Source of the DNA: Oikopleura dioica
Lineage: Eukaryota > Animalia > Chordata
DNA length: 64,000 bases
Direction: 5' to 3'
Assembly: GCA_907165135.1 (NCBI GenBank)
Contig: OU015566.1
Coordinates: 3,720,001 to 3,784,000, forward strand
In this document: positions 6,975 through 44,680 of the stretch, one piece after another
Position numbering within the stretch: the first letter of the stretch is position 1
Layout: each line of letters starts with the position of its first letter
Notes under the pieces: model-generated
Told to the model about the DNA's origin: nothing
What the model saw: only the letters and a program-made list of their open reading frames with translations
The model's database searches: none
Program-made: the position numbers and the translations under genes

Positions 6975-7299
6975 TAATTTTCGCGGTTTTCTTTACTGTA
7001 AAGAAACGTTGATTTCTGGTAATTCATTCGTCAATTGTCTCTTGTAATTGAAAATATCACTGTAGATATTTCTTTTTAGAACCATTCGATCATTGTGAGA
7101 ATAAAAATTGATTTGTCCGTATATCCGAGTTTGAGTTCCTTTTTGAAAATTATTGTTGTTTCTTTCCTTATATGCCGCAGAAGAGGCATTATCGAAGAAG
7201 AGACTAAATAGAGACCAGAATTTAATGATTCTCTCCTGGCCTTATCCATGTCGATTTTCTGAAAATAGACATCAATGATTCAGATCTTGTTTCTTTAAA

Positions 7300-13300: not shown

Positions 13301-13489
13301 TTCTGACAGCCTGGTTGCTCCAGAAATTATTCCTTATGATCGTAAAATCTAAGCGCACCGTCTCGCGCTTCTCCTGAATTTTTAATTTTCCGAAAAGCTT
13401 GATCTCTTTGAAGATCATAAATTACTGAGCGCTTTTGGCGCGCCGCGCTTCGCGGGTTTTTCTTTTAATAGAATATTCTCATCATGCTG

Positions 13490-14250
13490 GATCTGAAAGA
13501 GACGAAATTAGAGATTCTTTTGTAGTTTGAGATTCTTTCTTCCTTTGGAATTTTCATTATTTCTTTGAACATCAACAGTCTATTCATATGAATTATCCAT
13601 TTCAGAGTCTCTTCTCTGCGTTTTTATGAATAATGAATAAACCTTCAGGTATCGTTGTTCTCAAAGAGACTGAATTATAAGTTTCTTCTGAAGTATCAAA
13701 TTATTTATTCCTTTGAAAGTTTCATAACTTCTTTGAGTCTGCCCGTTAATGAATTCTAATTGTTTCTTCAGACGTTTTGCTCAGTTTTTGATGAATTATG
13801 AATACGACTTAGCGCGTATCCGCTCGAGAAGAGACTGAGTTAACGTCTCTTTTGAACTTTCGCAGCGCGTATTCCTTCTCATGTTTCATTATTTCAAAAG
13901 CCTTGCAAGTCTATGAATTTTAATTCCTATTTCAGAGTTTCTAGCTTGCATCTAGATGAATAATAAATAATCCCCCAGGCATGCTCGCTTTCGAGAATCA
14001 TAAAATTTTGATGGTGTTTCAAAGACTTCTAGTGCTTTTATAAATTTAAATGTTTATTCTGAGCTTACACGTGTGGGGGTTTATAAATTTTTCATTTAGC
14101 TTTCATTATTTTTAGAGTCTCTTTTCCGCTTTTATGAATTATAAAGAAATCCTACACGCAGGTTCACTTTAGAAAATCATAAAATTTTGATGGTTTTTCA
14201 AAGACTTACCGCGTTTTGATGAATTGTTATGTTTCTTCTAAGCTACCAGC
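13490..14250. repeat. Degenerate ~165-180-bp tandem repeat, 4-5 units
   Basis: Recurring TTTCAGAGTCT...TTTATGAAT.ATGAATA near 13601, 13765, 13931, 14111; AATCATAAAATTTTGATGGT at ~13994 and ~14174. Confidence 0.65.
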
Positions 14251-14493
14251 GTGAAGATTCATAAATATTTTTACCTTTCTTAATATTTTCCTAAAATTCA
14301 TACCTGGCGCTGGGTTTGTTTATACTTCTGACACCAATGTTATGCGCTGCCTTGCAATGGTGTATCAATCTTGCAATAAAAACTAACGCATATTTTGGTA
14401 TAACGTATTTTGTGTTTTATTTCATGTCTTGCACATGGTATGAAATGAGAACGTTACTGATCTGAAGGAAGGTGTCTTCCTTATATACTGATC

Positions 14494-14617
14494 GCTGAGC
14501 CCCCAGGCTATCCTACGCTGCATCCCGAGCCATCCAGGTTCTTATTGGTTGATCAATTATGCACGACGCATATCGTCAGGATGGAACGAGATGCTCAGGC
14601 TAACCTGGGCACTCAGC
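14494..14617. other. GC-rich imperfect long hairpin (~38-bp arms)
   Basis: GCTGAGCCCCCAGG...CATCCCGAGCCATCC pairs with GGATGGAACGAGATG...CCTGGGCACTCAGC. Confidence 0.55.
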
Positions 14618-14775
14618 TGCATAAACATAAGTTATATCATAACACTCTCGTCCAATCAGAAGCCAGTATATATTATGTCAGCCAATCATAAACGAGCAAG
14701 GGCCGAAATTGGTCAAATCGTTGTTGACACCCTTAATTAAAAGTACTCCTGCTTGCATCATTTCTGATTCCATTC

Positions 14776-16568
14776 CTGAGGACGACAATGAGCAAGCTTG
14801 GAATATACATTTGAATGAGATAGTACCCCAACTCGCGGCGCAGAATAAAGCTCGCTTCGAGACATGTGTAGTTGCCACTAATCAGGGATAATCAGAAAAA
14901 CCAATCTCTCAGGAAGGCTTTTTGCCAACAATCTGTCTGTATATTCTTTTTTACTGTATTCGTCGATTTAGTAAAATGAAAGTTCAAAAGCAATTTTTTC
15001 ATAAGAAATTTTAACAATCAATTAATGAAATCCCCGTCCCTTGAGTACACAATCGAGCAGCTTTTGTATGTTGATCCCAATAATTTAAACTGTGGTAGAG
15101 TCAGGTCATCGGCCATGTCGAGCGGCTTTTTACGCGTCCACTCGAATACCACATCCCTCTCGTCGTAGCCAAATGACTCGGCGCGGATTTTACAGCATTG
15201 TACGTCCAAGGGAAATCGGTGCAAAAGCTTTTACGGGCTGACAAGCAGATTCGTAGATTCTTAATTTTCTGCATAGAATAATAATAGCTTCAAAAGAGGG
15301 TTATAATTTTTGCACAGTTTTGATCGTTTAACGCCCTTAATTTTCGGAGATTTTGGAGGGATACCCTTAAACTTTAAGGGTCAGGGTTAAACTTTAAGGG
15401 TATGCCTCCGAAATCCAATTAAATGGCGACCCTCTTGGGCCTCCATTGAGGGCCCCCTACCCTTAATCTATGAAAGACAAGATTTTTTTTCTGACAAGAA
15501 CAGACATTTTTGGCGGCCTCTTCAATTGTCAGAATAAATAACTCACAAATTTGATGTCACAAAAGAGGAAAAACAAATCGTATGTCTTCATCTTTTTAAA
15601 TATTCAAAAGAGACATCACTTTTTCGCCGAATCCCTATTTGTCTCAAAACAAACGCATCCTGCCAAAATCAGCCCTTACACAAATGGCAAGAAAGCACCA
15701 GCGAAAGCCTAATTGAAACATAGACATCGCCATGATTAGACACGCGGAGCAGGGTGTTATTCGTGATCATCTGGTGAATCCGCGCGCTTTTCTCGTTGGA
15801 AAAAAATAAATCCGGAATCCATATTTTGTCCATGACGTCGGGGTGGACAGTCATCACCCTGTTGCACTCTTAATTCCGTGATTAATTAATTTCGACGGGA
15901 AAACTCGCTGACTGTATTTTTGGCTCGAAGAATGAACAAAGAGAGGGACACTTGGTTATATTGCAAATTTCAACAAAGTCATTATTTTTCATTAAATTTA
16001 AAATTTAGACTTTTATTATGACTAGAAATCGCGTCTGCTGATTGGCCGATAGACCTCATACAAGCTTCTGATTGGCTGTTTTTGAGCATAAAACAGACAA
16101 TCAGAACATTTTTGTCAATAAGTTTGTACCTCTTCTACTCCCAGTACGCTCGATGCACTGAGTAATATTGCCCCAGCTGAGCCTCGGATCCTTCCAGCGC
16201 ATTCTCAGAAACAATCCCAATCTGTAATCCATTGCTTGTTCATCTACTGAGTCCAAGTTTGGAATATGATAGCTCACTCTTTCAAAGGATTATGCAGGTA
16301 GACTAGGGTTAAATCTCAAATATACCGCGAAAAAATAGCCAAATATGATAAGGGAAGATACAGAAAAAAACAGGTGAAAAATGGCCAAATCGTTGTTGAC
16401 ACCCTTAATTTGGGACTTTTTATCCTCTTTCCTGACTCCCGTCGGCGCTCGTTTTTCAAAAGGTCGAATTCTCTTATCATAGTATTTGATCTTCTCATAA
16501 ATATCTGCTTCGAATTCTGATCCATATACAGTCGAATACAGTAATAATTGAAAAAATGCATAAATCAT
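14776..16568 (-). CDS. Cys-loop anion channel subunit (glycine-receptor-like): ligand-binding domain plus M1 only
   Basis: Exons encode a signal peptide and YDKRIRP; [18 protein letters not shown]; [13 protein letters not shown]; Cys loop ...[10 protein letters not shown]; [35 protein letters not shown]2-M4 not found in the window. Confidence 0.9.
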
Positions 16569-25260: not shown

Positions 25261-26181
25261 ATCAATATTTTTATTGATATTTTTTATCTAATTTTCTTAT
25301 TTTCTTCGAATTTTATTTTCGCTTTTTTAAAAAATTTTATATAATAATATTTCTACCTTTCATCAAATCCAGAACAACAGCTAGAAAATAAACTCCTCGC
25401 CGTTTTTATCATCTTCTTTTTCTTCGTTTATTCAACTCTCTCCTTTTTTAATTCTTCAATTTCGTCTCTTATTCGCGGCGAAATGAATGAATGAAGTGTT
25501 TAAAATTGCAATAAGTTGGGATTATTAAACCTCTCGATAACGCTGAGAACGGAGCCGCTCGATTTTTTCGATTTCTTCTCTTTTTTTGCAGCGCTGCGAG
25601 TTGACGGCGCAGCGCGGAGGGCGCCAGAGTGAGAAACAGCGCATTTTTGACATTTTTATCAGGGAGGGATTTTATAACTGTAATTGACCTGTTATTGCAA
25701 TTTTCGATCATCGGAAAAATCAGGGCAAAAAAAATTTTTAGATTTTACAAATTTTAACGTCAAAAATTCGAAAAAGACATCAAAAATTACCAATTTTTAA
25801 GAGGTCTTTTCTTCCAAAATTACCATGATGATACCCTTATTTTCTTCCATATATCCTAAGCTCGAACCCTTATTTGAAGATTCTATAAGCAAAAAATAAA
25901 CAAAAAAATTCGGTAGAGTTTTATTAAGGGATCCCAAGGGACCTAATTATGAAACTTTACCAGCAGTTAGAAAAAAGGGTGCAGTTGTTTCATGGTAGCT
26001 GATCAAACTCGCCGCTACTTCCTTATGAGCTTCTCGCCATCTGTGACTACACTCTCGAGAGCACTCAGACTCGATTCAATCAGACCGCCTTTTTGTCACT
26101 TCCTTTTTTTTGGTCACGTGCTTCTCCTTCAGAAGTTTAAGGAAATTGAAGATATGACATCCTAAGCCTGGAAACATAAGA

Positions 26182-26393
26182 AGAAAGCCTAAGTCAGGGT
26201 CTAATAGAACTGAAATGAAAAGCCGCGCAGCGGCTTTCTGAAAAACGAAGCCACAAAGCGGCTTCGCTCATTTAGCCATTACATTCTATCGAAAATTCTG
26301 GCGAAGCCACTACGCGGCTTCGTTTTTGAAAAAGCCGCTGCGCGGCTTTTCATTTTAGTTCTTTCTGACCCTGTCTAAGGCTTTCTACACAGG
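26182..26393. mobile_element. MITE family X, copy 3
   Basis: AGAAAGCCTAAGTCAGGGTC ... GACCCTGTCTAAGGCTTTCTACACAGG; four symmetric AAGCC(G/A)C palindromes. Confidence 0.7.
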
Positions 26394-26950
26394 TTGTCCA
26401 GCCCTTTATCGTAAATTATACAGTAAAAAAGCCCTGTTTAGCCATTTCCGCTTCTGAGTTTATCCCCGGGTTTCCTGCCCCCCGAAACGCTTTCCTGTTT
26501 CATTTTCTTAATTGCGAGTAGATTTGGAACGCGGCCAAATCGCAGATGTTTCTGTCAATTTGGCGACACAATCGACAAATAAGCAACATGCAAAAAATTG
26601 ACATCTTTACGACCTTTTCATTCTAAATTTGCGCCGCTTCCTCTCTCACCGTCTGATTTTGCACGTGAGGGAGAATTTCAAAAACAATATTCTTTATTTC
26701 ATTAGAAAATTTATTTTTCCCTTTTTTGATAAAAAAGAATCGAAAATTTCCACTTGAAATTGAAAAGTGCTCTCGAAAAGAATTAAGGGGCTCCAATCAG
26801 GGACTTTTTGAAGCATACTCATGGTACTTGGCAAGAATTACAAGATTTGGTGAAAATCAACCTTTTTGAAGAAAAAAATGAAGTTCCAAATTGAGCAAAA
26901 GTAGAGCCCTTCCGATTTTCAAGGTTAGGGTTAGAGTGTTTATTGGCTTT

Positions 26951-27070
26951 TTGACGACATTTGGCAACATTCGGCGACATTCTTCGACATTCGGCGAAAT
27001 TTGGCGACATTTTGCGACATTCGGCGACATTTTGCGACATTTGGCAACATTCGGCGACATTTTGCGACAC
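26951..27070. repeat. 10-bp minisatellite x12 (consensus TTGGCGACAT)
   Basis: Twelve in-register decamers ending (G/C)ACAT; preceded by GGTTAGGGTTAG. Confidence 0.95.
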
Positions 27071-27314
27071 AAAAAATGTCGTCTATTTTCAAAAATATCT
27101 ACAAATTTCATATTTACAAAAGAAATCCTCTGAATAACCCTCGGAAATCCCTTCTTTTTCACAGAAATGCGCAATAAAAATCTGATAAGGATCGAACCAC
27201 CATCTGTTCAACCCTTTTTTTCTCACCCAATATCACGGTCAAAATCAAGCTCCTCCAATCACCGCGCTCTCATCCCTTCTATTTTCGTCACTCACCCGCG
27301 ACGATCGATTTATT

Positions 27315-27359
27315 GTATAGTAATCACGCATTAATAAATATGGTAACAGGAATATTCCC
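27315..27359 (-). repeat. Split direct repeat B2 (45 bp, 3' terminus of element)
   Basis: Identical to 27750-27794: GTATAGTAATCACGCATTAATAAATATGGTAACAGGAATATTCCC. Confidence 0.95.
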
Positions 27360-27487
27360 GAGCACGCGCAATTACAATACTATGGAAGACTCTGGCCGTT
27401 TTGAGTCTAGGTTATGGCTTGGGTAGTATGTAAGCGTGTGCTCGTTTACCTACATACTAACGCTTATTCTAGGGACGGAGGGCGGGT

Positions 27488-27794
27488 GTCTTTGAGAGTT
27501 GATTAAATTCTCGGCTTTGCGAGTTTGGAGGCTCTCAAAGATTCTCTTAACTTTTTCCCTGTGAATATTATAGCCCTAGGCTATAATTTTCGGTTCTGGC
27601 TTGCGTGATTCTATGCAGCCGCTTAAGTGTCTCGCTCTCTTGCGCCTGTATCACCTCCCGTTTTGGAAATGGGTCACGGCACTGTCGGTTCTTTAGTTGC
27701 TAATCCGAGTCCACCGATGCTTGAAGCTGCTAATCCGAATCCTATATTCGTATAGTAATCACGCATTAATAAATATGGTAACAGGAATATTCCC
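27488..27794 (-). repeat. Internal B1-A2 junction (A2 27488-27749, 262 bp; B1 27750-27794, 45 bp)
   Basis: A2 matches 42050-42311 and abuts B1 directly. Confidence 0.95.
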
Positions 27795-27844
27795 TCCCCT
27801 ACCATTTTTGTTATTCTCATCATTGCTAGGTCATTATGGCAATT

Positions 27845-29067
27845 TTATTTTGGAAATATTGGCAGTTTGAACGAAGGTTTTACCAGAGGCTTATTATTCC
27901 GTTTCGCTCTTCTGCTTCTTAGCTTCTTGAGCATCTTCCGGATCTTCGGAGTCTGATCCTGTCTTAGACTTATTTTAAATATATTTTCAGGCTTAATTCC
28001 TACCTGCTGTGTCTCAGGTTGTTCTTTGAGGCGCCTCTTAGCTGCTCGAGCCTCTGCAATTGATGCTGGGGCCCCGTTATCGGTGCATTCCAGCCAGCAT
28101 CGTTCGTAATAGTCTGGCATGACGCTTCCTGGTGCCCAGCGCATCGTGTGAGCCAGTGTGTTTTGGGCTTGGCCGGCCCTGCGGCCCTCCACGTAGAAGC
28201 TGACTCGGCCTGAGTGGGCTGATACCTAGATTTTGGCATAAAATATTTTTTTTTCGGTTAGCGTAGCTCTTACCTTTTTGTCGAGTCCTGCCTTTTCACT
28301 GTAGCGTCTCAGATAGTCGCCCGCGATGCTTGTTTTTCCTTCTAGAAGCGGAAACACTAAGCCTTAAGGTTTTTGATGCTTTGGGGTTTGCGTGGTGCTG
28401 TTGTACCTTTTGCTTTGTCACGTAGTTGGTGTCGAAGCTCTGTTGTGATGGGTGCTCCGTGTTCTATATCCATTGGAACGTTGAGCGTTTCCATTCGTTT
28501 GCAAAAAGGGTCTGTTTTGCTGCTTCTGATGTGGAAGCGCCAGTACTCCTTGCCATTTTCTTTGAGGATGCTTCTGTCCTCAATTCGGAGATTCAGAACT
28601 TCGCCCATTCGAGCCCCCGTGACGTAGGTGAAGAAGAAGGCCATCGCTGCTTCTCGAGGCTTGGGTTTTTTAGTTTCCATGAGCTCGTGCCAAAGCTTAA
28701 CTGCTTCCGATTCTTCCAGGACTTCTGCTTGCTGAAATTTGGGTTTTTTTTTTTGGTTTTTCCGTTCGCTTACCTTGGGGAATTGAAGCGATTCTTTGGC
28801 AGATTCTCTCGCTCTGTGTTCGCACCAGAGCTTTATTTGACGCTTTTCTTTCTGGCTAAGGGCCTTGTTTAGTTTTAGGGCCGCTACATCTTGGATGAGG
28901 GTTACCCCTTTGCCATAAGCGTAGGCTTTAAGCTGCGGTCTGACTAGAAGCCTGTCCAGGAAATGTTGGATGATATCTTCGTGGGAAGCTTCCTGGTAGT
29001 TGAAGCTTGCCAAAGCCTCGGCGATGTCCCAGAGTTCTTTGAGATTCTCGAGTTCCAGCCAGGTCAT
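27845..29067 (-). CDS. Tyrosine recombinase, 3 exons, 374 aa
   Basis: Exons 29067-28407, 28356-28274, 28225-27845; GT-AG introns of 50 and 48 nt. Spliced product has R (GARMGE), K (RSSKTD), HxxR (AHSGR), W (MRW) and Y (DYY). A further in-frame 45-nt intron near 28000 is possible. Confidence 0.93.
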
Positions 29068-29243
29068 TTCTGAAACTTCAGGGGTTAAGAAACTGCCACA
29101 ATTCTTAATATATTTTTTTTTTTAGGAATGGTGGGCTAATCCCTTTTACTGTTTAATTGAGGGGCAGTTTTTTTTTTAAAGGGTTTTTATAGAGTGGCTA
29201 TGGGGCAGTTTTATTTTGCGCTGGCTGTCTGAGGCTTGACGCT

Positions 29244-30485
29244 TTACTCGACGCCTCCTTGATCTTGAAATTTCTTGGGAGCGTCATTGTTGCTGCTGTT
29301 TCCTCCTCCGCGACCTCGTCCTCTGCCTCGTCCTCGGCCTCTGCCTCTGCCTCGGAAGCCTTTGTTTTTCTGGTCATCCGTATTATCAGTTTTTTGGCCG
29401 TTGTTGTGGTCTCCACGCGGCTTTTTGGCTGAGCCTGCATCTGAGAAACCGCCTCGGCGACCCCTTTTGCTGCCGGAGTCTTTTCCTGTGAGTCTCCAGT
29501 CTTCTGAGCCGTCCATCGCCGCTTGTAGCCATTTTTTGTGATGCGGTGTGGTCATGTTCATGTTTAGGGAGTGCTCGAAGTCCATTTGGGTGTTGGCGGT
29601 CATAAGGGCTGAGCATCGAAGGAGGGCTGTTCTCCGAGGCATGTCCGGGGTTTTGATCAGGAAATCCATGATGGCCGTTACCACTGGCTTTGCTCGCTTC
29701 TCAGGCCCCATAGCCGCTTTGTAGCGTCTTAGAAGCTCCATCAGCTCGTGCCCCTTGAACATTCGCTGCTTCTTCGCGTCTGTAATGAAGTGGCGGAATC
29801 GTCGGCCCATTTCGTCCAGGTTTTCACCTTCGCCTTGGTTAAGGTCAACCGCTCCGATCTGGGTCTAAAAGAATTCGTTTTTCTAGGATTCTCTTTTTGG
29901 TAGTTTTACCCTGTAGTAGGAAGTGATGCCTGTTGTTGGGCAGGTTTCCGAGTGAATTGCCGCTGTCTCGCCTTTCTTATGAGTCAGGTCGGAGATTTCC
30001 GCTTCCCGAATCTTGATCGCCTTGAGCATGGTGGACTTCGCTGCGTAGCGCTCCATTTTCTTGACGCTTAGTTTTTCGAGTGCCTCCGCTATTTCTTTAG
30101 GGTTGTTGGCATCGTAGAACTTGTTGTCCTCGGCAGATCGCTTTCTTGCATTTGGCTCTGCTTCCTTGATTTCGATGCTTTTTTGGCGATTTTCGGCGAG
30201 AGTCTTCATTTCGGCCTAAAAATCATCTTTTTGACGACTTAAGGTTAGTGGCTAGGATCTTACGATGAGTTCGTCCGTCATAGAATCGTGGAAGACGAGG
30301 TCGTTGCGTATGTCGTCGATTTCGAGTCTTAGCCGCTTTATCTCTTCCGAAGCTTCGGGGGATTCTTGGTCGGCTTCGTAGTCGGCCTGCGTGATGGCTA
30401 TCCGCGTAGCTCGTGTTCTTGAATCATGCTGCGTGGACGTAAAGTGCTCCTTCAACATTGACAACACATTATGATGGTCGCCCAT
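29244..30485 (-). CDS. Element ORF-E, 3 exons, 382 aa, coiled-coil with C-terminal (GR)n tail; putative nucleic-acid-binding/structural protein
   Basis: Exons 30485-30264, 30215-29910, 29864-29244; GT-AG introns of 48 and 45 nt, both phase 0 and frame-joining; GFRGRGRGRGRGRGRGRGG near the end. Confidence 0.85.
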
Positions 30486-30602
30486 ATTGGCAGGTTGATG
30501 CGGCAATCTGAAGAAAGGGTTCGAGTCAGCTGGGTTATAAAATTGGGGCTGCGATTTTGTGTGATGCAAGATAGAAAATATAGTTCTCAAAGAGCTGCTA
30601 AT

Positions 30603-33112
30603 TTAGAGTCTATTGCAGATAATTTTTATGGTGGATATATTCGATGCTATTTTCCAGTAACCAGCTTCTGTCTTTATTTTCGAAGGCGTGAGGATAGAGT
30701 CTGCTGGAATGTCGAAGATTCTTAGGCCTCTAAGCCTTGCTTCAGCGACAACCGGTGTTTCCGCCTCATAGATGGTGATAACAAGCGCCCATGGAGTTGG
30801 GATCTCCAGGAGTCTTTTGAAGAATTTGTATGCTATAACTTGTGGTGGGAAAGCATAAAGGACTCTTCCAATCAATTTATATATTGGGAAGCTTAAAAAG
30901 TCAGCGCCCAACGCGTGTGCGGATTCTCTGCGTGCAATGAAGTCTTCGCATCTCTTGTTAATTTCCTGAAAAGTTGGCCGCTTTATTTTTGAACTGGTGC
31001 TTTTGCTCGATGCTTACCGTTGCTGCCACGTCGACATCCAGCGTCTTTGAGAGATGAGATTGCAGATATGCGAAGCCGTTGTTCGTCAGCCGCTGTTCTC
31101 TCGAATCGATGATTCTGGAAGGCGCGTCTGCCAGCTGCTTTTTTGTGGAAACCCAGTCGACCTTCATATCAATATTGAATCTCTGGGCGACTTCCCAGAT
31201 TCTGACTAAGATGCTGTTCATTTCGAGGTCTTTGCTTCCCACCATGATGCCTTGTACGACCGAGTCGTTGTCGCAGAGGCAGAGGATTCGCTTGTTTTCT
31301 AGCTTCGGTCCGTACCATTCTACGACATAAAGGATAGCCATGGCCTCTTTTATGCAGATGTGGCTGTCTGCTATTTCTTCGTCCCATGCAAATTTTTCTT
31401 CCAAATTCCATTGTTCTATAACGATTGCTCCCGCGTGCATAGATGCATCTGTATAGATAATAATGCCTGATTCTTGACGGTTATGCTGCGTCCAGATTCT
31501 CGAAAGTCCATTCTCTTCAAGTTTCCTCCACTTGGCCCACTCGCTTCTGACCTGATCTGTAAGCTTCGTGAATTCTTGATCTTTGTGCATGGCCTGGGTT
31601 ATTAGGAGCGTCGTTTGGCGGATTAGAAGCCTCATGTTGGAGAAGACTTCTGCCATGCTTGCCATGGTGCCTCTGATTCTTTCTAGCAGCTTGGTTTCCA
31701 CTTGCTGCTTTTCTAGGGCTTCTTGCATGAGGTTTATCAGGGCGTTCCAGCGTTGAGGAGGTATTTCTACCGTTTCTTTGACTGTATCCAGAATGAAGCC
31801 TAGGAATTCGATTCTTTGCGTCGGTTTGAATGTGCTTTTCTCGATGTTCACATAGCCGCCAAGGGAGATCAGAGTAGCTGCTGTCGCCCAGACTTCTTTG
31901 CAGATTTTTGTACCGTCTAGAAGCTGTCTTCTTTCCTCGTCTGATGCTGGTGACACAATCAAGAGGCGATCATCGAGGTAGAGCGTGATTTTTACCCCAT
32001 TTTTTCTCAGAAAATTGACGCCACAGAGGTTCATGAGCTGGTAGATGCCTGGAGCGGCTGGTATTCCGAACGCCAAGATGTTATTCATGAATCTTTGGCC
32101 TCCCCATTCGAAGCAGGCCATTTTGCGGCTTTCTTCTGAGATCGGCAGCTGATGAAAACCTAAATTTTTCAGTTTTTTTTTTTGTGGCAAAAAATTTCTC
32201 GCCTTTTTTATCATCAAACTTGAACAGCAAGTCGCCTCTGTTGAGCATCTGAATCGCTGTGCCTACTGCATCTAATTTGCAGGGGAAGGTAAACAATTGA
32301 AGTGGTTTGAGGATTCCTCCGTTGAGGCAGACTCTTGTTTCCTTTCCGGGCTTGTCCACTAGAATGAAGCCTGATTGCAGCCAGCAGTTTTTCGATGCTT
32401 CTGGAAGCCTTGAGATTGAGCCCATCTTGCACCAGGTGAGGATTTGGTCGATGATTTCTTCGTTTCTAGACAGGACCGCTTCTTGGCTCGCTACGGTAAG
32501 ACTCTTGAATCTTTTCCCGATTTTCTCGTAGGGCTTTGGAACGAATTTTGTGATGCGCAGGCGGCCGTTTTTCCAAGTTTTGTGGTTGCCTCCGAGCTTC
32601 TTGAGGGTTTCTGAGTTTGCGTGATGTCGTTTCCAGCGCGTAACCAGCATCTTTTTCTTGAATTTTTCTGGCTGCTTGTGCGAGATTGGCTTGAGGTTAT
32701 AAAATAGATCGGCCCCGTTCATGACGAAGTGGTAGATGAGAGGCTTGATTTTTTCTGGCATCTGATGAATCAGGGTTCTCCAGTTGTCTTTATTGTGTGT
32801 CCAAATGCCGGCGATGAAGTCCGATTCTTTTTTGAAGAAGAGTGAGCTCCAGTCTGGCTTCTCGCGGCCTTCTAAGACTGCAACGACTCTTTCTAGCAGC
32901 TTTGATTCATAGATTTTCCATTCTTGCAGTGAGTTTGGGCCTTTAACGTGTGATTCTTTTAATGTGACAGGTGTGATGAGGCTAGTTTTCAATGGCTCGA
33001 ACGCGCCTTTATTAGCTAGAGCCGTCATTTGCGACTCGATGCTCGCCCAAGTCGTCGCCTTCTTCGGTTTCTTCTCTTTTTCGCTTTCCTCCTTGTCTCC
33101 AGGCGCCTGCAT
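30603..33112 (-). CDS. Pol: reverse transcriptase, RNase H and DIRS-type adenine-methyltransferase-like domain, 3 exons, 804 aa
   Basis: Exons 33112-32203, 32159-31018, 30965-30603. Motifs FDDKKG|FHQLPI, LAFGIPAAP, YLDD, IEFLG; RNase H YTDAS, IKEAMA, CDN, LADAPSR; MTase LDVDVAAT|EINKRC...LGADF...YAFPP. Introns: 43-nt GC-AG and 52-nt GT-AG. Confidence 0.95.
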
Positions 33113-34483
33113 GGTCGTAGTTTTTAGGAATAGGGATTCGCCAAAACAGCTTTTCGTAAGTCGTGCCGCTCAGTGACGCTGGATTCTCTAAGCCTCTTTC
33201 GATTCTGTCGTCGATTCCACTTAGATTGAGGATCTTGTATTCGGCCTCCGGGATGTTTTGGCGGTTTGGCCAGATTCTTCGTAATGATAAGATTGCGTCC
33301 CAGGCTGTAAACTCCGGGTTACAATCCACATTTGCCAAGAAATCCTTAAGAATGATGCTGATTGGGTTAGCTTCACCCAGTAGGGAGTTCAAATGCGTCC
33401 AGGCCGATCTTGCCGCGCTTGAAAGGAGTCTCGGGAAGATGCAGCGGGTATTCGTGATTTGGAAAAGGATTTCTCCAAAGATTGCGTTCGCAATGGCTGC
33501 AGCCATCTGTCTTTCGTTTGAGAAGGAGGCACTTCTTTCCTCCACCCTTCTGTTCAGGACTTGTTTGAATCTTAGGTTCCAGATGTGGGAGTAGATAATG
33601 AATCTGACTGACGCTTTAGAGTTCGAGGCTGCTAGTTTCTCGCATTTGGCCACGGCCATTTTCAGGATAGCTTCTGCTGGGTGGCCCCAGAGCCTTCCTA
33701 TTATCCAGAAGATGGCTTCTTCTAGCTTCTGAAGATCTTCTCCGCTTATTGAGTCTTGTTCAGTAGGCGCCATCGTAGTTGCCCAAAACACCAGCTCTTT
33801 GGACCGGAAGATTTCCGAATTGTGGACTTGCTTCATCAGATTCTCCACTAGCGGTCTTACTTTCCCTTCGATTGTGTTCTGAATCGCTTCTACTTCTATT
33901 TTATTAGTAGATGCTATGCGTCTGTTGATGTTGATTGACGTGCTGTGGAGCAGTGTTGCAATAGCTTGGAAAGCCTCTGTGGATTCGGCTGCTTCTGTTT
34001 CCTCTTCTTCCATTTGTCTGAGGATTTTTTTTACCGCGTTTGGAGCTTCTTGGGATTCTGAGAATATTTTCAGCGCTTCTTTGACGAGGTTCGTCATTTT
34101 TGCCTCTACCGTTTCTCCATAGCAAGCGACTCTTTTAGGAGGCACCGCTGCGTTCGTGTTGAGGCTATTTTGGATATCCCAGATTAGGGCTTTTAAAATT
34201 TCCAATTGAAGAGTTGTTCTTGCTTCATGAGCGGTTGGAAGGGTGGCTGGTATTTCGGGGACTTCCTCTGCTGCTTCCTCATCCGATTCTGCTGAGATGC
34301 TCTCCGAGAGGGATTCCTCTTTTTAAGGATAAGAAGCTTTGCACCATAAATTTAGATTCTATGTGAAAATGTGGACTTACTTCCAGGTTAAAGCTTCGAC
34401 TCTAAGTGATTAATTCAAAAAATAGAATCAGTCCTGATCTCAATGACCTCTTTTTTTTTTTGGCTACTGAAGCTTCCGTGCAT
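33012..34483 (-). CDS. Element ORF-C, 3 exons, 453 aa, probable Gag-position protein overlapping pol
   Basis: Exons 34483-34448, 34401-34381, 34316-33012 (GT-AG introns of 46 and 64 nt) give one frame; 3' end overlaps the pol start by 101 nt in another frame. Gag identity inferred from position only; the two small 5' exons are less certain. Confidence 0.75.
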
Positions 34484-34862
34484 CAAAAGCTAATCCAAAA
34501 CTTTATATCTATCCTTCTCCTGAGGCTGAAGGCATCTGTGAATCTTTTGGGGGGACTTCGCATGATCCAGACTCGAGTTTCATTTGCCCTTCTAAACTTT
34601 TGTCTTTGAGTCTCTTTTTTTTTGACTCTTGTATTCTTAAAAGGTATTTCTTTTTGAGACTTAGTGCTACATTTCTTTTGCCAGTAAAGAGTCGAATGTC
34701 TTCTATTGAGACTTGCTTATTTATTTTAGCACAGTTGGCTATTTGCCTAAGTAAAAGTTTTTTCCGTTAAAAAATTTGAAGATACAGATGATTAATAAGA
34801 GGCTTTTCCTATGATGAACAACTTTTCGTTGTTTTTGAATCTTCTTGCTTCTTTTGGCAGCA

Positions 34863-37205
34863 TCAGTAGGTCGGGGCAGCTTCGATGTTGATGGCAGGGA
34901 TGCTGATTTTGAGGTCGTTGAGGCATCGGACGAACATTTGTCTGATGAATTTGACGAGTTTGCCGCCGACTATCTTCATTGTGAAGCAGATGAGGATGTC
35001 CAGACGCTTTGGGTTGATGAAGCCGGCTTCTAAAGGCAGATTTGTTAATTTATGTTTTCATTGGTTCTAACTTACGGTAAGCTTCTTGGAATCTTTTCTT
35101 GATGCCACGGTAATCCATCCATTCGAAGATGTAGTGCATGACGCGGATTTCCTTGCTTCGGATGAGGCTGGATGCTTTGAAGGGCGGCTCGTCCTTGATT
35201 GTCCAACCACTGCGGCTGTGGTACTTTGCGAGTGATCGGCCCTCCTGCTGCGAGCTGATGAGCTTCTCGTGGCTGAGGCTGCTGTACCAGGCTTCTTTGA
35301 TCGCTTCTCGTTCAGCGTAGGAGAGACCATTTTCTTTCGGGGCGCCCAGGGCTTCTCTGACGCTATCCTTGCTCATGAGCTTGGCTTTTTTAAAAGGTCA
35401 CTTTTTGGTTTCTATTTTTAAAAGGTTTTTTTTTTTAGATTATTTTTATTTCTGCTTCAAAGTGACCCTTTCCTTGGCTTTTGGTCAGGAAGTAGTGATT
35501 CCCGGGTCGGCCCGTGTCTGCCACGTCGTAGATGCTGATGCGAGGCTTGAGGAGCGGCTTCTCTTCCTTCTGGGCTTCTTTTAGCTGCTTTTCGCGTTCT
35601 TCTTTCTCCTTCTGCTGGAAGTACTGCTGGCGGATCCTGGTGTTTTCTTCCACTTGACGCTGAGCCGCAGCTTTGGCCTCTTTCTTTCGTTGTTGTCGAG
35701 CCAGTTCTTCTTGCTCCTTCTGCTGCTGTTCTTGGCGCTTTCGAGCTTCTTCCTCCTTCTTTCGCTCTTCCAACTTCCGCTGGCGCTCAAGCTCCTGCTG
35801 CTTTTGTCTTTCTTCCTCTTCTTGACGTTCCATCTCCATCTGGCGCTCACGTTCCTGCTGCTTTCGCTGCTTTTCTCGCTCCTCTGTCTGTGAGGAGGCT
35901 TCCGCTTGTTGGAGAAGCTCTTCGGTGAGGCCACTTCGGCGGCTGAGCTGGTGTCTTCGTCTTCGCTCCATCATCTTGGCTCTGAAGCTTGTTGTAGTTG
36001 GCTGCTTTGGCGGATCTGCGGCTGCGGGTTCGCTGAAGCCTTCTAGCTGTGGCTCTTCCGCTGCTGAGAAGAATTCTTCCTCGAGGATTTCTTCTTTTTC
36101 TTCGTCATCGCCGCTGGCTCGTCTGAGTTTGCTTGGGTCGATCTTGACGGGCGGGTTGAACTGGCCTGGGTCTTTATAGAGGATTTTAAAGCCGTTTTAA
36201 TTCTAGAGAAACTTCACTTTTCGTTTTTATTTGGCTATAAGAATCCTTTCCTGACTGCGCGTTGAAAGAATCTTCATCGTCGCTGTCGTTTTCTGCGCTG
36301 TCCGTGGCTGCGACGACGTCGACGGCTGCGCTGGCTTCACTTTCAGGCTGCTGAGGCTCAGGTTCAGGCGCTTCCGGCGGTTCTTCCAGCTGCTGAGACT
36401 CTTTTTTCAAGGATTATAATGTTTGCTTTAAGACTATTTGAGGCTTAGCGATTCTGCTGACTTTTTAAATCCTTTCCTTGTTCTGTTTGGACTTCCTGAT
36501 GCTTGAGCTCTGCTGCTGGAGGGTCCAAAGTCTGAGTTGAAGCATCTTCTGGAAGCTCGAGGAAGAACTTCAGTGCGTAGGAAGCTGCTTTCGTTTCTTC
36601 CCAGCCTTTCTCTCGGATCATCTTCGCCTTGACTTCGCTCCTCATGTCCCTTCGCTCATCCTTTGAAGGGACTCTGTCTTTCTTGAATCTGAAGCCAGTC
36701 TTTGCCTTGAGATCGGCGATTCGTTCCCAGTAGACTGGCTCGGCCGCTTCGTCGAAGTTCTCGCCTTCTTCCAGGTATGCGAGGCAGACGATCCAAGGGA
36801 TGTCGATGTGCGCTTTGGTGACGTTCAGGCAGGAGTAGAAGAGGCTGGGGACTGAGAGATGCTTGTGTTCTTCTTCCAAGTCTCCGTACTCGTCCCGGAC
36901 GAGTTTTGAGAGGATTTTGGATGCTTTCTCCATCGCTTCCATATGCTTCTTGAGAGTGAGCTTCATGTCCTTGTCCATGAGGCCTTTTAAATGAGTTTAA
37001 AAGTGATCTTATGATCTTCATTTCAGATTATTAAGGGTTTCTTTTTAAACTCTTTTCCTTTGATCAAGGTTTCAGTAACCTCTAGAAACTTCTGGGCCAC
37101 TTTCGCTCGGTGCCTCTGGAAGATGGCATTGCCTTTCTCTTTCTTTTTCTCTTGCTTGAGGATGGGCTTGGGCATCTGCTGCTTGTTGCTGCTTTTGCTG
37201 CTCAT
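34863..37205 (-). CDS. Element ORF-B, 6 exons, 659 aa, unknown function, long E/R/K/Q coiled-coil
   Basis: Exons 37205-37058, 36983-36477, 36400-36251, 36171-35473, 35384-35076, 35029-34863; four GA-AG introns (74, 76, 79, 88 nt) and one GT-AG (46 nt), all phase 1; total 1980 nt with no internal stop. Confidence 0.8.
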
Positions 37206-37812
37206 AATTCCGTGTCTAGAAAGAAATTTCGATTAATTTTTTTTTTTGAAAATTTTGAATTTTTGTTGGCACGGAAAGAAAAAATTTGAGTACGAGCGGC
37301 AAATTTTAAGTTTTATCAAATAAAATTTTGTTTTGAGCAGCTAAAGCGGGAAAAATTCTCTCGGAAGCTTCTTTTTTTTTTTGATTCTCTTTTTTGGGGC
37401 GAGCGATTCTCTTTATTTTGTTTCAATTCTCAGAATTTCCAATGATCTGAGTTCGCGGCGCGCCCGCTCCTGATTGGCTGGCGCTCGCTCGCCGCGGGAA
37501 TTTTCCCACGCTCGTTTTTTCTGCTTTGGAATGGGTTTTTCCTTTCTTTTTATAAAGGATGCTTAATTGTATTTTGATTCACTGGCTATGAACCCTTTTC
37601 CTGGGATTTTTGCTGCTTATTTGGTTTCTGGTGTGAGGCTTTATGGATTTAAAATTTTTCTGGGCGATTTCTCTTTTAAGGGGACAATTTAACTGGCTGG
37701 AGTTCGGTTCGAGCCGATTAGATTCTCTAAGCTTCTGTCGCTTTTCTATTGTCTCCCTTCTCCTGAAGAGTGTGAAAATTAGAAGTGGGGTCAGGGTTTC
37801 TCTGGACAGGCG

Positions 37813-40800
37813 CTAATGTTGCTTGGCTTCCGTCTGACGTAGGACTCTAGCGATTCTTTCTTCAAGCTTCTGTAGCGCTGGCGTCCAGACATTCGGGAAG
37901 AAATTTTCTGCCTCAGCTGCTGGAGCTTCTTCCTTGGATAAAAAGTGGCTTGCCGCTTTTACTGCGTCCATCAGAATGTCGCGAATGTGGGTTGTGAATG
38001 GCCCGGCGATGCTGATGTCATGCTTTTCTGCCGCTATTTCTTCCCAAGATGCATTCGCGGATCTGAGAATTTGTTTAAGCTTCTTTTTTCTAGATTCTGT
38101 TAGAGCCGGATTCTACATATTTTCAGCTTATCATTTTGGGGCTCTTCTTTAGTAAAATAAATGTAAAAAATTACATATTTTTTACCCAAGGTTTCTAAAA
38201 AAATTTTAATTTATCTGAGGCTGAATTTGTAAGAAATTACTAATTTCTTACCGAGGGCGTATCGAGTCTTTATTTTTGAGGCCCCTTTTTTTTTGTTAAC
38301 AAGATGTAAAAAATTACTTATTTTTTACCGAGGGCTTTTCAATCTAATTACTTGAGTAAGTAAATTGTAAAGTTTTACTTTTTTCTTACCACAAGCTTCT
38401 GGAGCTTCTTTTTGAGGCTCTTTTTTTTTGACCTGTATAAAATATACTTATTTTTCCTGGAGGCTTTATTTTTTATTTACCTGAGGCTGATTTTGGTGGA
38501 AATTTCCATCGGCCAGGGGCGCGAGGCTTCGCCATTGCAGGTTTTGAACATTTCTCCTGCAACTTTGGGGTGTGCCCAGCAAGGCGTCTGAATCGAGTCA
38601 TATTCGCCATCGCAGCCGAGTGTGTAGATGTTCCATACGATGGTAAAGGCAGGGTTGAGCTCGGCGAATTTTTAGGCGTGACAATTCGCAGATTGTAAAT
38701 CGCGTGAAACGATAGCTGCTGTTTGAAGCTTTTTGCATCTTCGTTGCTTGGGAAAACGATGGTCAGGTAGCTTCGTTTTGACGCTTCTGTTGCGATCAGA
38801 GCCGCTACTTCATTCCAGTCGCCTTTTTTGACGTCTGAAATTTGGATTGCGAGGGTGGAGAGCGGCTCAAGTGCGGAATTGGCCCCTTTGCCAATCGGAA
38901 AAGCAGAGAAGCTGTTTCTGGCGTATTGGAGCGCGTCGTGGTAGATGATTAGGCCTTTAAGAAAGGGATCTTCGGCTCTGTTTCTTTTCTTGACGGCCGA
39001 GTCTAGCGAATTGAATCTTGTCACGAAGTCGAGGAGATTATCCCATCCGCTGCTGAGTAGGATTTCCGTCGCTTTCCAGGCTTCAATGATTGAATCGAAG
39101 CCCTCCACCTCCGTTTCTTGGATCTTTTTGATGAGGTTTTTGGTGGCCGCTGCGTTCGAGTCGTTTTTGAAGATCTGCGCAAGCTCCTGATGTAAGCTGT
39201 GCCATTCGGGGCTGTCGATTCTGATGCTTCTTTCTTTGAGCGCGTCGGCCAGGGCTGGCGGGAATCTTTCTTCGTGATTCTTGACGCAGTCGCGTCTCCT
39301 GCGCTCCAGGACTTCTAGCTTCATGCCCTTATTTTGGCACCATGCTGCACGGTCTTCTTCAAGTGGCGATTCGCAGCCTCGATCTTCTCGTGCTTCGGGC
39401 GATTCTTTCAGGCTGAGCCTTGCTTCTTCTGTGACTCTGAGTCTGTGGTAAAGCCAGCCCAGTGTGAACTTTTCGATGCTTGGATCCGGGCTGAATTTGC
39501 CTCCTTTTGCCCATTTCCAACCTGTGGTAAGAATTTTGAGATTGTGGATGACATCTCTGGCGTCTGGGAGCCTCTTTGTTTCATTCACCACTTTCACCAT
39601 CGTGTCTAGCAGTTTTAGCTGAGTTGAAGATGGCCGTTTGAGTCCTACGACGCACCTATCGTTTCTCCAGAAGTTCTTGTCGTTGTTGAAGCTTTCGATT
39701 CCTTCTTTGCAGCTACTTGTCGTCCAATCCGTGAGAGCTAGCTTCTTCAGCGCCGCTGCCTCAGTTGTGTTGAGCATCGGATGATCTGCTAGGGCTAGAA
39801 GCGCTTTTTCCTGTCTGCTGCTTGGGGCGGGATCTAGGTTGAAAATCCATAGCTGTGGAGCTGCCCTGCACGGGATCCACAATACCCAGTGGTATTCGCC
39901 TCTTCCTATTTCTTTGATTCGGAGAGTAGTGCCGATGGGGCAGGTCTTTTTAGCCGCTGCACCGAGCCACTTTTCCAACGACTCTGATTCCGTGAGTTGC
40001 TTCCATTCTGAGTGCCACTGGGTGATCATTTCTCTGCAATCACCGTCTTGTCCAATGATGCTATCGTTGAGAAGCTGTTTGTGAGCCACGTGCAGGATGA
40101 GCTGCGAGAGAATTCGCGTAAGCGGTGTGGCTCTTGGAAGTTTTCCGTCTTTTTTCTGGAAACTTCCGATGACTTCCGGAATCCAGGCATCCGCATTCGC
40201 TGGTTCTCGTCTGGTCCAGCTGGTTTCTGGCTTCTTTTTGAGGGAGATCCAGGCGTTTTCTTGGTGGCATATTGTGTGCCAGTTTTTGGACGCTTTCAGC
40301 CATTGCAGCTTTTCGAGCATTTCTGCTGGGCTTGGATGCGCTTCGATTCTGAAAAGTGCTTCGAAGACTTCTTCAAGCCCTTTGGTTATAAGCTTCGTTA
40401 ACCATGAGCGGCTGCGGAAACCTTGAAGCTCGTAGTCTGCTCTGGCCTTGGTCATGTTTTCTTTGATCACGCGGATACAGATTGCGTGCCAGAAACCTTC
40501 GTCGAGGATGTCCGCGTGGTCCAGCATCTCCCACTCATTGAACCAATCTTCTGAGCGCAGCTTGTTTCGACGCTTGAATTCCTCCAGGACTGAGGTTGGA
40601 AAGAGGCGATTAGCTTCGTCTGGATCCGCCGGTGTTAGGAATCTGAGGTCGTTGCCCGAATCATCTTCAGTTGGGAGTCTTTTGGCTACGATTCTCAGGG
40701 CGTTTCCTCTTCTGCCCTCTGGTCTTGCGTTGGCGTCAAAATCTGCTATAGATTCGAAGCTTCTCAAGTCGAGGCTCGGGCTAAAGCTGCACCCCTCATT

Positions 40801-41388
40801 CGTTGAGAGTTTCGTCGGACTGATAGCTGGGCTAAATGGGTATGGCGCTAATTCTAGCTGCCAATCTTCTGCGGCTTTTCCTTCGGCTGCTGCTATTTTT
40901 GAAGAAATCGCTTGGAGCGTCTCCGTTGGGCAGCTTGATTCTGGTGTGAGCCAAAGTGATTCTTTGCCCGATGTTGAGCAGAATATGATCTTGGCCTATG
41001 ACGCTAGCTCTTCGAATTGACGCTTCGTCTTTTCGGGCGTTTTGGGATTGAAAGCCAGATTCTGGTCGGCCAAGAGGCTGTGGACGTCTGAGAGAACTGC
41101 GAGTCTGATGATTTTCGAATCAGGTCCTTCTGGGAGAAGGATTGTTCTTGAGATTCGTGACCAATCGATCATTGCGTCTAGGACTAGATCATTTCTAATG
41201 GGCTCATCAGTCATTCTCTTTTTGACTCTAAAAGGATTCAAAGCGGAGCCTTTCCTGAGGATAGCTGCTTCTAGTGTTTGAAGCTTCCTGGGCGTGTGCT
41301 TGATTGGCAGTTTTGGGTGTGCATCTGAGGCTGTGCCCACTTTCGGCGCGTAATTTTGGGCTGCTTTCCCGAATGCCTCGCCGAACAT
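37813..41388 (-). CDS. Element ORF-A, ~1060 aa if the single in-frame TAG is bypassed; unknown function
   Basis: One frame runs from ATG 41388 to 38481 with a lone TAG at 40998-40996; donor CAG|GTAAAT at 38480 joins in phase 1 to terminal exon 38096-37813. Confidence 0.7.
38163..38457. repeat. Array of five 23-bp palindromic units (GTAA(A/G)AAAT-N5-ATTT(T/C)TTAC) spaced 61-77 bp
   Basis: Units start at 38163, 38229, 38306, 38367, 38435; first three near-perfect, last two degenerate. Confidence 0.75.
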
Positions 41389-42049
41389 AGCTGAATAAAG
41401 CTTGATTGAGCAAGGATTCTTAATTTTGTATAGAAATATCCTCAAGGTACAGGAATGCGGTGGGTTGCAGTCTCAGAAATTCTAAAACGCGCAGCTGCCG
41501 ATTCGTTCTTGATCGGTCTTTTAACCAGGGTTTCTCTGCCCCGGGGCTAGCAGCTCCGAATCGTTCTAGTTCGGAATCTTCTTAGCTTCTCTAAGGTGTG
41601 AAAATGATGCTTATGCTGCTATCTTCTCCTTTCCGGGAGCTTCAGGCTTTTTTTTTTAGATCTCGTTCTAGGATCTGCCTGGAATGGGGGATTTTTGGTG
41701 CATCGCGCGCGCTCGCTCTGATTGGCTACGGCTTACCGCGCCTTTATATGAACTTGCGCCGCTTATGCAGGTGCCGCTTTTTCCTTTGAGTGAAGCGGGA
41801 GGCCGTTACTAGAGTGTTGGCCTCATCCCAGAATCTTTTAAGGTCCGTAGACTCGAAATTTAAGCATCTTTTCTTCCGCAATTCTTGTAGAATAAGCGTA
41901 TAAGTCCAGGGGACTTTTAGTTTTTATAGTCCCTTGGACTGAGTTTAGAGTCTTTGAGACTTTTAAGGGTGGGCAAGGTGCCCAAACAGTTTATAGTCTT
42001 GAAGGACTTGGGAATAACTGGTAAAACCTAATGATGGTCTACCTTAAGA

Positions 42050-42311
42050 GTCTTTGAGAGTTGATTAAATTCTCGGCTTTGCGAGTTTGGAGGCTCTCAA
42101 AGATTCTCTTAACTTTTTCCCTGTGAATATTATAGCCCTAGGCTATAATTTTCGGTTCTGGCTTGCGTGATTCTATGCAGCCGCTTAAGTGTCTCGCTCT
42201 CTTGCGCCTGTATCACCTCCCGTTTTGGAAATGGGTCACGGCACTGTCGGTTCTTTAGTTGCTAATCCGAGTCCACCGATGCTTGAAGCTGCTAATCCGA
42301 ATCCTATATTC
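42050..42311 (-). repeat. Split direct repeat A1 (262 bp, 5' terminus of element)
   Basis: Matches 27488-27749; contains hairpin ATTATAGCC-CTA-GGCTATAAT and 9-bp inverted repeat CTTTGAGAG/CTCTCAAAG. Confidence 0.95.
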
Positions 42312-44145: not shown

Positions 44146-44680
44146 TGATTCTTCGGCAAGACCGAAGAATTGATGCTTTAAATAACACTGATTCTTCGGC
44201 TAATTGAGAATTGCCTTGAACCGAAGGATTTATGATAAACTTGACAGTGATTCTTCGGCAAATTTTCTAGAATCCATTATCGAAATTCTTTTGATAGATC
44301 TTTGATTGTCAAATATGAGTCATAATAAAAAGGACATTTTCTAGAGAAAAAACTCATTTTAGCAATAAGTATTTTCTATAATTTGAGGCTAGTGTTAGGG
44401 GGCACTGAGCAAAGTGACAGAACAAACTCACCCGAGGGGGATAGGCTAGGGTTAGTTAGGGTTACTGAAGGTAACCCTAAGTAACCCTAGACTAGACCCC
44501 GGCATTTTAGGACCTAAGGGGCGGAGCCCCTTGGTAAGGGGCACAGGAATCTGTGAATAAATTCACCTTAGCCGAAGAATCAGTGCATCTTCTATCACTT
44601 ATTCTTCGATTCTTGCCGAAGAATCACTGTTCTTTCACGAATCAATCCTTCGGCCTCCAAGCCGAAGAATTAGGCCGTAT
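44146..44680. mobile_element. Degenerate foldback element with subterminal GATTCTTCGGC repeats
   Basis: Three GATTCTTCGGC on the left mirrored by three GCCGAAGAAT on the right; centre has TAGGGTTA/TAACCCTA inverted motifs. Confidence 0.5.

Follow-up and report, generated by a model that had tools for sequence, protein, structure and literature searches.

The 64-kb window analysed here (Oikopleura dioica contig OU015566.1, positions 3,720,001 to 3,784,000) contains a complete retroelement that is read on the minus strand; all coordinates below are window positions. This single 14,997-bp element carries at least six co-oriented genes and at least nine spliceosomal-type introns, some of which interrupt the coding sequence of the reverse transcriptase (RT), of a methyltransferase (MT)-like domain and of a tyrosine recombinase (YR). 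The catalytic motifs are intact once the introns are removed and the intron sites are common to relatives, which bears out the original prediction that introns of spliceosomal type lie within the enzyme-coding regions of a genuine retroelement.

The element is delimited by split direct repeats in the order A1...B1A2...B2 (Table 1), with a unique spacer of 128 nt (27487-27360) between A2 and B2. Its G+C content is 45-50%, against 34-41% in the flanks. The 15-kb layout is collinear along its whole length in the window and in three further loci (L001, L003 and L002), and the same repeat plan is present in L001 and L003. Target-site duplications were found in the flanks of none of the five copies compared, and these flanks are mutually unrelated. 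The B repeat is the best-conserved non-coding sequence of the family; its palindrome reads GGAATATTCC in the window and GGGAATATTCCC in the relatives (L001, L003 and L002), and from its sequence it is a candidate for the core site of the recombinase. At the 3' end of the Bergen O. dioica copy (L011:15274-16573), there are four B repeats and extra tandem B-A-spacer modules compared with L002, which otherwise resembles the same locus on another haplotype.

Spliced in silico, pol holds the motifs FDDKKGFHQ, YLDD, YTDAS, DVAATEIN and YAFPP. The RVT_1 match together with YLDD and YTDAS provides the pairing of RT and RNase H (RH) that is typical of the DIRS order, and relatives of pol are named ribonuclease H by UniRef. 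The MT-like region (DVDVAAT..N..YAFPP) aligns to the PF05869 (Dam-domain) region of a conventional DIRS relative, P0019 (E=6e-05); Pfam Dam itself was not detected in the Oikopleura proteins, and the domain call is of moderate confidence. The spliced recombinase gene contains the R (TGARMGE), HxxR, W and Y (PDYYER) boxes; its Phage_integrase matches are below the Pfam cut-off, and precomputed Phage_integrase matches exist on relatives, including the L011 relative. No integrase family was matched by any open reading frame (ORF) in Pfam, and no aspartic-protease family was among the Pfam matches on the ORF pieces scanned. Split direct repeats and an MT-like domain after RNase H are features of PAT-like elements. 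Terminal inverted repeats were not found and the repeats are direct, so that the element is not DIRS1-like sensu stricto; nor does it have the compact anatomy of three uninterrupted ORFs known from DIRS and PAT elements. Because of the split direct repeats, RVT_1, Phage_integrase and the Dam-region alignment, the element is classified on sequence features as a full-length, larvacean-specific retrotransposon of the DIRS order and PAT type. Penelope-like, long terminal repeat (LTR) element and Crypton identities were rejected on the combination of RT-RNase H, tyrosine recombinase and split direct repeats.

Table 1. Features of the retroelement in the 64-kb window (slashes mark exon-intron or predicted boundaries; aa, amino acids).
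Feature	Coordinates	Strand	Details
Complete element	27315..42311	-	14,997 bp; 5' end GAATATAGGA..., 3' end ...GATTACTATAC; no target-site duplication
A1, 5' arm of split direct repeat	42050..42311	-	262 nt, 100% identical to A2
Conserved leader block (candidate processing signal)	42032..42050	-	CTCTTAAG/GTAGACCATCA (AAG/GTAGAC); just after A1, at A1/leader boundary
ORF-A, lineage-specific	37813..41388	-	About 1000 aa; broken in window copy
Candidate intron or insertion in ORF-A	38090..38480	-	391 nt, GTAAAT...TCTAG; absent from L001, L003, L002
ORF-B region	34860..37200	-	One to three genes, partly E/K-rich; conserved coding segments with changing frames relative to L001, L003
ORF-B intron	35075-35030	-	46 nt, GTAAGT...CCTTTAG
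Gag-position ORF	33012..34322	-	About 400 aa; overlaps pol start by about 100 nt
pol (RT, RNase H, DIRS-type MT-like domain)	30603..33112	-	804 aa after two introns; Pfam RVT_1 E=1.2e-08
RT intron	32202-32160	-	43 nt, GC-AG, AAG/GCGAGA...TTTAG/GT; phase 1 in Gly codon of FDDKK/G-FHQLPI (motif A)
MT-domain intron	31017-30966	-	52 nt, GTAAGC...TTTTCAG; phase 0 after DVAAT
Acceptor-like TTTYAG site, ORF-X	30506-30514	-	No nearby donor
ORF-X	29244..30485	-	382 aa after two introns; homologue annotated in L001 (382 aa), L003 (384 aa)
ORF-X introns (two)	30263-30216 and 29909-29865	-	
Acceptor-like TTTYAG site, YR	29068-29075	-	No nearby donor
Tyrosine recombinase (YR)	27845..29067	-	345 aa after four introns; Phage_integrase E=8e-04 to 1e-03 on exon pieces
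YR intron 1	28773-28732	-	42 nt; in frame, stop-free in window copy; not listed in original prediction
YR intron 2	28406-28357	-	50 nt, GTACAA...CTTAG
YR intron 3	28273-28226	-	48 nt, GTAAGA...TCTAG; directly before VSAHSGR (HxxR box)
YR intron 4	28003-27959	-	45 nt; not listed in original prediction
B1, internal copy of B	27750..27794	-	45 nt, begins with palindrome GGAATATTCC; abuts A2; 100% identical to B2
A2, internal copy of A	27488..27749	-	262 nt, 100% identical to A1
B2, 3' terminal copy of B	27315..27359	-	45 nt, 100% identical to B1

Nine introns of the window copy are of high confidence. They are 42-52 nt long, begin with GT or GC and end with AG, and have a G+C content of 33%, compared with 47% in the pol exons. 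The four introns first predicted in the RT, MT and YR coding regions are all present on the minus strand where they had been placed, and their removal restores frame and motifs as claimed: after in silico splicing pol (804 aa), ORF-X (382 aa) and the recombinase gene (345 aa) are open. The RT, MT and YR-2 introns have lengths that are not divisible by three, and the others, except YR-1, carry in-frame stops; the proteins therefore need intron removal. The predicted total of at least 13 introns is borne out in part: besides the nine there is one candidate of 391 nt in ORF-A, and several frame changes of the ORF-B region lack convincing splice sites. Host introns have a median length of 48-51 nt and 11-12% of them are non-canonical (PMC8008620), which makes both the tiny lengths and the GC donor plausible.

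Intron sites were placed via homology and by aligning annotated O. dioica proteins exactly to the loci that encode them. Calling introns from the splice-site score alone was abandoned, as it chose a wrong RT intron and a control scan of the opposite strand gave many matches. Gene models of neighbouring genes were rebuilt by dynamic programming from product lengths; these models are ambiguous for the ORF-B genes and were used only at canonical, shared splice sites. The loci compared include copies from one O. dioica genome (L001 and L003 on chr1, L009 on PAR and L010 on chr2), the Bergen O. dioica copy (L011) and marine metagenome contigs (L005, L006 and L008), and further relatives were drawn from the marine metagenome and from Logan contigs. 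The closest proteins all belong to O. dioica, the Okinawa models being 75% identical and the Bergen models 64%; pol is 75% identical to the O. dioica proteins P0001 and P0002. A nematode host, suggested by TTTCAG acceptors and introns of about 48 nt, was discarded since every close homologue comes from O. dioica or from marine plankton contigs; nor is the contig human.

Both pol introns are conserved in position, well beyond what chance would give. The RT intron occupies the same site and phase in the window, L001, L003, L002, L005, L008, L009, L011 and L012, and its donor is GT in all of these relatives; the MT intron is found at the same site in the window, L001, L003, L002, L006, L008, L009, L011 and L012. 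Exact protein mapping places the two at the same codon and phase in six loci (L001, L003, L002, L009, L011 and L012), and the metagenome contigs L005, L006 and L008 agree on these sites. Wherever they were mapped or read, the introns of relatives are GT...AG and about 40-61 nt long. L008 had been suggested as an intron-less copy by tabular tblastn output; the alignment shows its introns as in-frame gaps. Forced into a global alignment, without a shuffled control, the short AT-rich intron sequences are 52-69% identical, which is read as no detectable conservation. Across the 1140-nt RT-RH exon, synonymous divergence (pS) is 0.72-0.73, which is saturated, and nonsynonymous divergence (dN) is 0.09-0.20, pointing to strong purifying selection on RT-RH across families. 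In more distant metagenome relatives (35-40% identity) motif A is uninterrupted, and in the tree these fall outside a strongly supported larvacean clade.

Recently dispersed copies also keep their introns. Two intact copies, L001 (OU015566.1, about 3,347,004 to 3,361,514, at L001 positions 1109-15619) and L009 (OU015568.1, within 13,147,097-13,169,261), match each other at 99.2-99.4% identity across 14.5 kb. The pair L003 and L010 reaches 99.26% across 14.7 kb. The members of each pair lie on different chromosomes, homology ends at the element termini in both pairs, and the flanks are unrelated. The pol introns are 59 and 45 nt long in L009 and 60 and 45 nt in L001, at the same sites. L010 and L003 form a single contiguous alignment with no space for an intron-sized gap, the introns of L010 being inferred from this alignment. 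One condition that would have refuted the prediction was that most dispersed copies lack the introns; the prediction survived, since the near-identical copies L001 and L009 keep them, as do families that have diverged to saturation. Because near-identical dispersed copies and saturated families alike retain introns, copying from an intron-containing template is well supported by these comparisons, and the alignments indicate that recent transposition carried the introns along.

The best explanation, and a probable one, is that introns are now heritable in a large larvacean DIRS element that copies itself by an RNA route from unspliced RNA and obtains its enzymes from spliced mRNAs. In such a life cycle, one long primary RNA would be transcribed from the element. 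Part of it would become mRNAs by removal of the small introns, the downstream genes probably being reached via unpaired 3' splice sites, either by spliced-leader (SL) trans-splicing of the kind known from host operons or by the use of a splice donor in the leader. These mRNAs would give Pol, the recombinase and the accessory proteins, which would work in trans on the fraction of full-length RNA left unspliced. The unspliced RNA would then be reverse-transcribed, the complementary DNA (cDNA) circle would be closed with the internal B1A2 junction as a bridge, and the tyrosine recombinase would insert the circle without target duplication. The unspliced fraction would most likely be secured by RNA-binding proteins of the element that compete with the spliceosome, the products of the Gag-position ORF and of the RG-rich ORF-X being candidates.

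An intron-containing template and proteins acting in trans are both expected because Pol and the recombinase cannot be read from the unspliced RNA, yet the copies keep their introns. The original prediction had stated that the proteins need splicing while the template must be the unspliced RNA, and had implied a mechanism that selects or protects this precursor; such a dedicated mechanism is hypothetical. The introns do block translation and the copied template appears to have carried them; that this template was RNA is what we infer. The precedent is DIRS-1 of Dictyostelium, which retrotransposes through RNA; its cDNA is made from unspliced as well as spliced tagged RNA, and the authors conclude that its proteins act in trans (PMC7192593).

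The same experiment leaves room for the main alternative to capture by element proteins, a passive leak in which a 15-kb RNA with at least ten introns is incompletely spliced, rare unspliced molecules serve as templates, and copies that lose introns are themselves lost or unsampled. Such a leak could suffice to supply an unspliced template, because DIRS-1 cDNA arises from both RNA forms (PMC7192593), and it is a possible explanation, clearly less probable than the one preferred here. At five sites or more, families differ in whether an intron is present, as if partly spliced RNA were sometimes copied, and the RT donor in the window is of the weaker GC type. A leak fits less well with the finding that all main branches of the larvacean clade still carry the motif-A and MT introns although their synonymous sites have diverged to saturation, or with the lack of any intron-sized deletion in either near-identical pair. 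Host introns this small are, moreover, normally removed efficiently.

Several observations weigh against heritable introns copied from a protected, unspliced RNA. Splicing at these junctions and the existence of an unspliced full-length RNA are both predictions from DNA sequence, and the O. dioica gene models that are spliced at these sites are predictions guided by RNA-seq hints and stop short of proof. The window copy carries the only GC donor seen at the RT site and also has a broken ORF-A, so it may be non-autonomous. Intron content varies: L007 has no motif-A intron and carries another about 75 residues downstream; YR intron 2 is missing in L002, introns 1, 3 and 4 being common to the window, L001, L003 and L002; and a third ORF-X intron is present in L001 and L003, not in the window. 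The tree leaves intron gain and loss unpolarised, and the placement of L007 at the base of the clade is not settled. No intron-less copies occur among the few sampled, though spliced templating of the Dictyostelium kind would predict more of them. Finally, searches gave no function for the Gag-position ORF, ORF-A, ORF-B or ORF-X.

The L002, L008, L011 and L012 families additionally share an extra intron in the linker between RT and RH. Intron gain is frequent in Oikopleura, a lineage noted for the fastest intron turnover among animals. The differences between families could reflect either intron gain or the occasional use of partly spliced RNA as a template.

Candidate signals for the processing of a long RNA lie in the leader and before ORF-X and YR. 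The leader block at the A1/leader boundary (Table 1) is the longest run of invariant columns in an alignment of the otherwise diverged leaders of the window, L001 and L003, and is a candidate 5' splice donor or other cis element. A second leader block, GCCAATCAG at 41718-41726 (minus strand), is CCAAT-box-like, lies about 330 nt before the ORF-A start codon and is kept in the window, L001 and L003. Three to four diverged loci (window, L001, L003 and L002) have acceptor-like TTTYAG motifs at 2-22 nt before the start codons of ORF-X and YR. These motifs are candidate acceptors for the 40-nt spliced leader or for leader splicing; SL trans-splicing in O. dioica needs only an unpaired acceptor (PMC6883708). 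Together, the TTTYAG sites and the leader block suggest that the downstream genes are expressed from sub-genomic RNAs, which might arise by SL trans-splicing (PMC6883708) or by leader splicing of the Tor3a env type (PMC4402516).

A more far-reaching version of the preferred life cycle would make the element a "retro-operon" that has adopted host gene architecture, with SL- or leader-spliced genes and a genomic RNA that is no message for its own enzymes. The products of ORF-A, ORF-X and the Gag-position ORF would shield the 15-kb RNA from the spliceosome. This version is put forward tentatively and is, on balance, doubtful.

Mobility through DNA alone would account for the introns trivially. 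The recombinase would excise and re-insert, or replicatively integrate, double-stranded DNA as it does in Cryptons, and RT would not be the copying enzyme. The element does have a complete tyrosine recombinase and direct repeats able to recombine, the extra tandem modules of L011 resemble a recombination product, and the near-identical copies taken alone fit RNA and DNA routes equally. Such a route is nevertheless unlikely: RT-RH is under strong purifying selection with saturated synonymous sites, the A1...B1A2...B2 plan is that accounted for by the circularisation of cDNA, and the type element DIRS-1 has been shown to move through spliced RNA (PMC7192593). That the interruptions are decay in a dead copy, or that the cluster is a domesticated host locus, is highly improbable despite the real damage to ORF-A (a stop and a frame change), since every interruption in pol, ORF-X and YR is GT or GC...AG, 42-52 nt long and AT-rich, most are found again in independent loci with codon and phase unchanged, a few sites varying between families, the terminal repeats are 100% identical, and the relatives are multi-copy with unrelated flanks.

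ORF-A is intact and uninterrupted in L001 (1820-4867), L003 (1524-4493) and L002 (1001-3499). In the window it is damaged by an in-frame stop at 40998-40996, a sense codon in three relatives, and by a frame change near 38677-38671 within an A-run. The copy is probably non-autonomous for ORF-A, unless the frame change in the A-run is a homopolymer assembly error, and because ORF-A is broken it may rely on proteins from intact copies. HMMER searches with ORF-A returned short fragments without a name, a single JGI metagenome protein, a bacterial SPOR-repeat match judged spurious and, as the relatives that bear a source name, uncharacterised O. dioica proteins. It gave no Pfam, PDB-sequence or word-index match, and a fold search with its AlphaFold model (predicted local distance difference test score, pLDDT, 61) found nothing at E<=1e-3; the sole hint is a weak resemblance of the model to ubiquitin-like or UBX folds.

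The 391-nt candidate intron of ORF-A contains four related repeat units of roughly 60-75 nt each, and three of the four contain a perfect or near-perfect hairpin, GGTAAnAAA...TTTnTTAC (GGTAAAAAATAnGTAATTTTTTAC). Its removal would rejoin a conserved frame-2 segment to the conserved C-terminal segment. From its sequence the insertion looks like a recently gained intron built from a repeat.

In the ORF-B region, splice-site candidates for the frame changes at about 37,000-35,400 are weak and none is convincing. Near the position of the ORF-B intron, GTAAG introns are placed at 7765-7845 in L001 and 7828-7876 in L003, both in approximate gene-model reconstructions. The only large difference between L001 and L009 is a 91-nt segment in ORF-B coding sequence (L009:6592-6682, against L001:6686), which begins GAAAGG, ends GAAAAG and has terminal inverted repeats of about 12 nt; it is also absent from the window. 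This segment may be an insertion resembling a miniature inverted-repeat transposable element (MITE), and could act as a GA-AG intron.

The Gag-position ORF is about 58-60% identical in translation to an intronless gene of L001 (8569-9753). It has no Pfam match, and its AlphaFold model is predicted to be all-alpha at low confidence (pLDDT 50). The C-terminus of ORF-X (about 29370-29300) is rich in RG/RGG, a feature kept in relatives (e.g. the C-terminus of P0004). RG/RGG repeats are typical of RNA-binding proteins.

Outside the element, a 10-nt unit (TTCGGCGACA-like) is repeated about 15 times in tandem at 26940-27089, some 230 nt beyond the 3' end of the element. Inverted-repeat pairs at 44159-44656 and 26173-26395 have arms of 42-95 nt that are 71-83% complementary, and may be small MITE-like elements. 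Host-gene exons at 58488-59648 (+) and 59805-60452 (+) encode an astacin-type metalloprotease domain, for which a search found no close protein, and the N-terminal and middle domains of an acyl-CoA dehydrogenase.

Among known systems, the closest likeness is to PAT of Panagrellus and kangaroo of Volvox, which like the window element have RT-RNase H followed by an MT-like domain, a tyrosine recombinase, the A1...B1A2...B2 plan and no target duplication. PAT-like DIRS elements are usually 4-6 kb in size. The window element, in contrast to PAT-like elements, reaches about 15 kb, with six or more genes that include the orphan ORF-A (about 1000 aa), ORF-B and the RG-rich ORF-X; it has at least nine introns, several of them in catalytic motifs, and A2 and B2 are set apart by 128 nt of spacer. 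In the same order, DIRS-1 of Dictyostelium discoideum has the properties that the preferred life cycle requires, namely retrotransposition via RNA, cDNA made from unspliced as well as spliced RNA and proteins reported to act in trans (PMC7192593), but it has inverted terminal repeats with an internal complementary region, three overlapping ORFs, a length of about 4.8 kb and no natural introns.

Penelope-like elements also keep spliceosomal introns, a property deemed exceptional (PMC4209133), and the Terminons of rotifers are likewise giant retroelements with multiple ORFs (PMC6431247). Both differ from the window element in having an RT of the telomerase-like clade, a GIY-YIG endonuclease or none, target-primed integration and hammerhead ribozymes; neither an Rfam family, ribozymes included, nor a GIY-YIG match was found in the window. 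Penelope-like elements had been named as the standard exception to intron loss. They do keep introns, but they are not alone, as retroviruses and some LTR elements, including Tor3a of Oikopleura, keep splice sites (PMC4402516); Tor3a makes its env mRNA by splicing from a GA donor in the LTR (PMC4402516).

Retroviruses and env-bearing LTR elements resemble the proposed life cycle in that unspliced full-length RNA is the genome and spliced sub-genomic RNA expresses downstream genes. In Caenorhabditis elegans, export of the unspliced genomic RNA of Cer1 requires a protein of the element itself (PMC10309623). The Gag-Pol of these elements, however, is translated from the unspliced RNA, whereas the unspliced RNA of the window element cannot encode Pol or the recombinase; the window element also has no LTRs and no DDE integrase. 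Cryptons share the tyrosine recombinase, common introns and the absence of a target duplication of the ordinary kind, but lack RT, RNase H and split direct repeats.

Retrotransposons are treated as nearly intron-free by definition, and annotation pipelines seek uninterrupted RT, MT and YR ORFs. DIRS1-like elements are already known in O. dioica (PMC3266345, PMC5240408), and an earlier ORF-based survey found only four DIRS1-like sequences in this species (PMC3266345). A full-text literature search returned no account of introns, a 15-kb size or accessory genes in DIRS elements, although a mention in Volff et al. 2004 or Denoeud et al. 2010 is possible.

The findings describe an active-looking DIRS clade in which the catalytic core of every enzyme has kept introns over many transposition cycles, and they show that an element of the DIRS order can grow to 15 kb and carry several orphan genes. 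In the preferred life cycle, the roles of retroelement RNA as message and as genome would be split further than in retroviruses. This raises the question of how an intron-rich RNA escapes splicing and nuclear retention, which is testable in a culturable chordate for which RNA-seq, CAGE and long-read resources are in place. The family also provides natural material for the study of intron gain and loss in Oikopleura; if the retro-operon proposal is true, the intron gains and losses of its families would amount to a dated history of how introns turn over within a mobile element.

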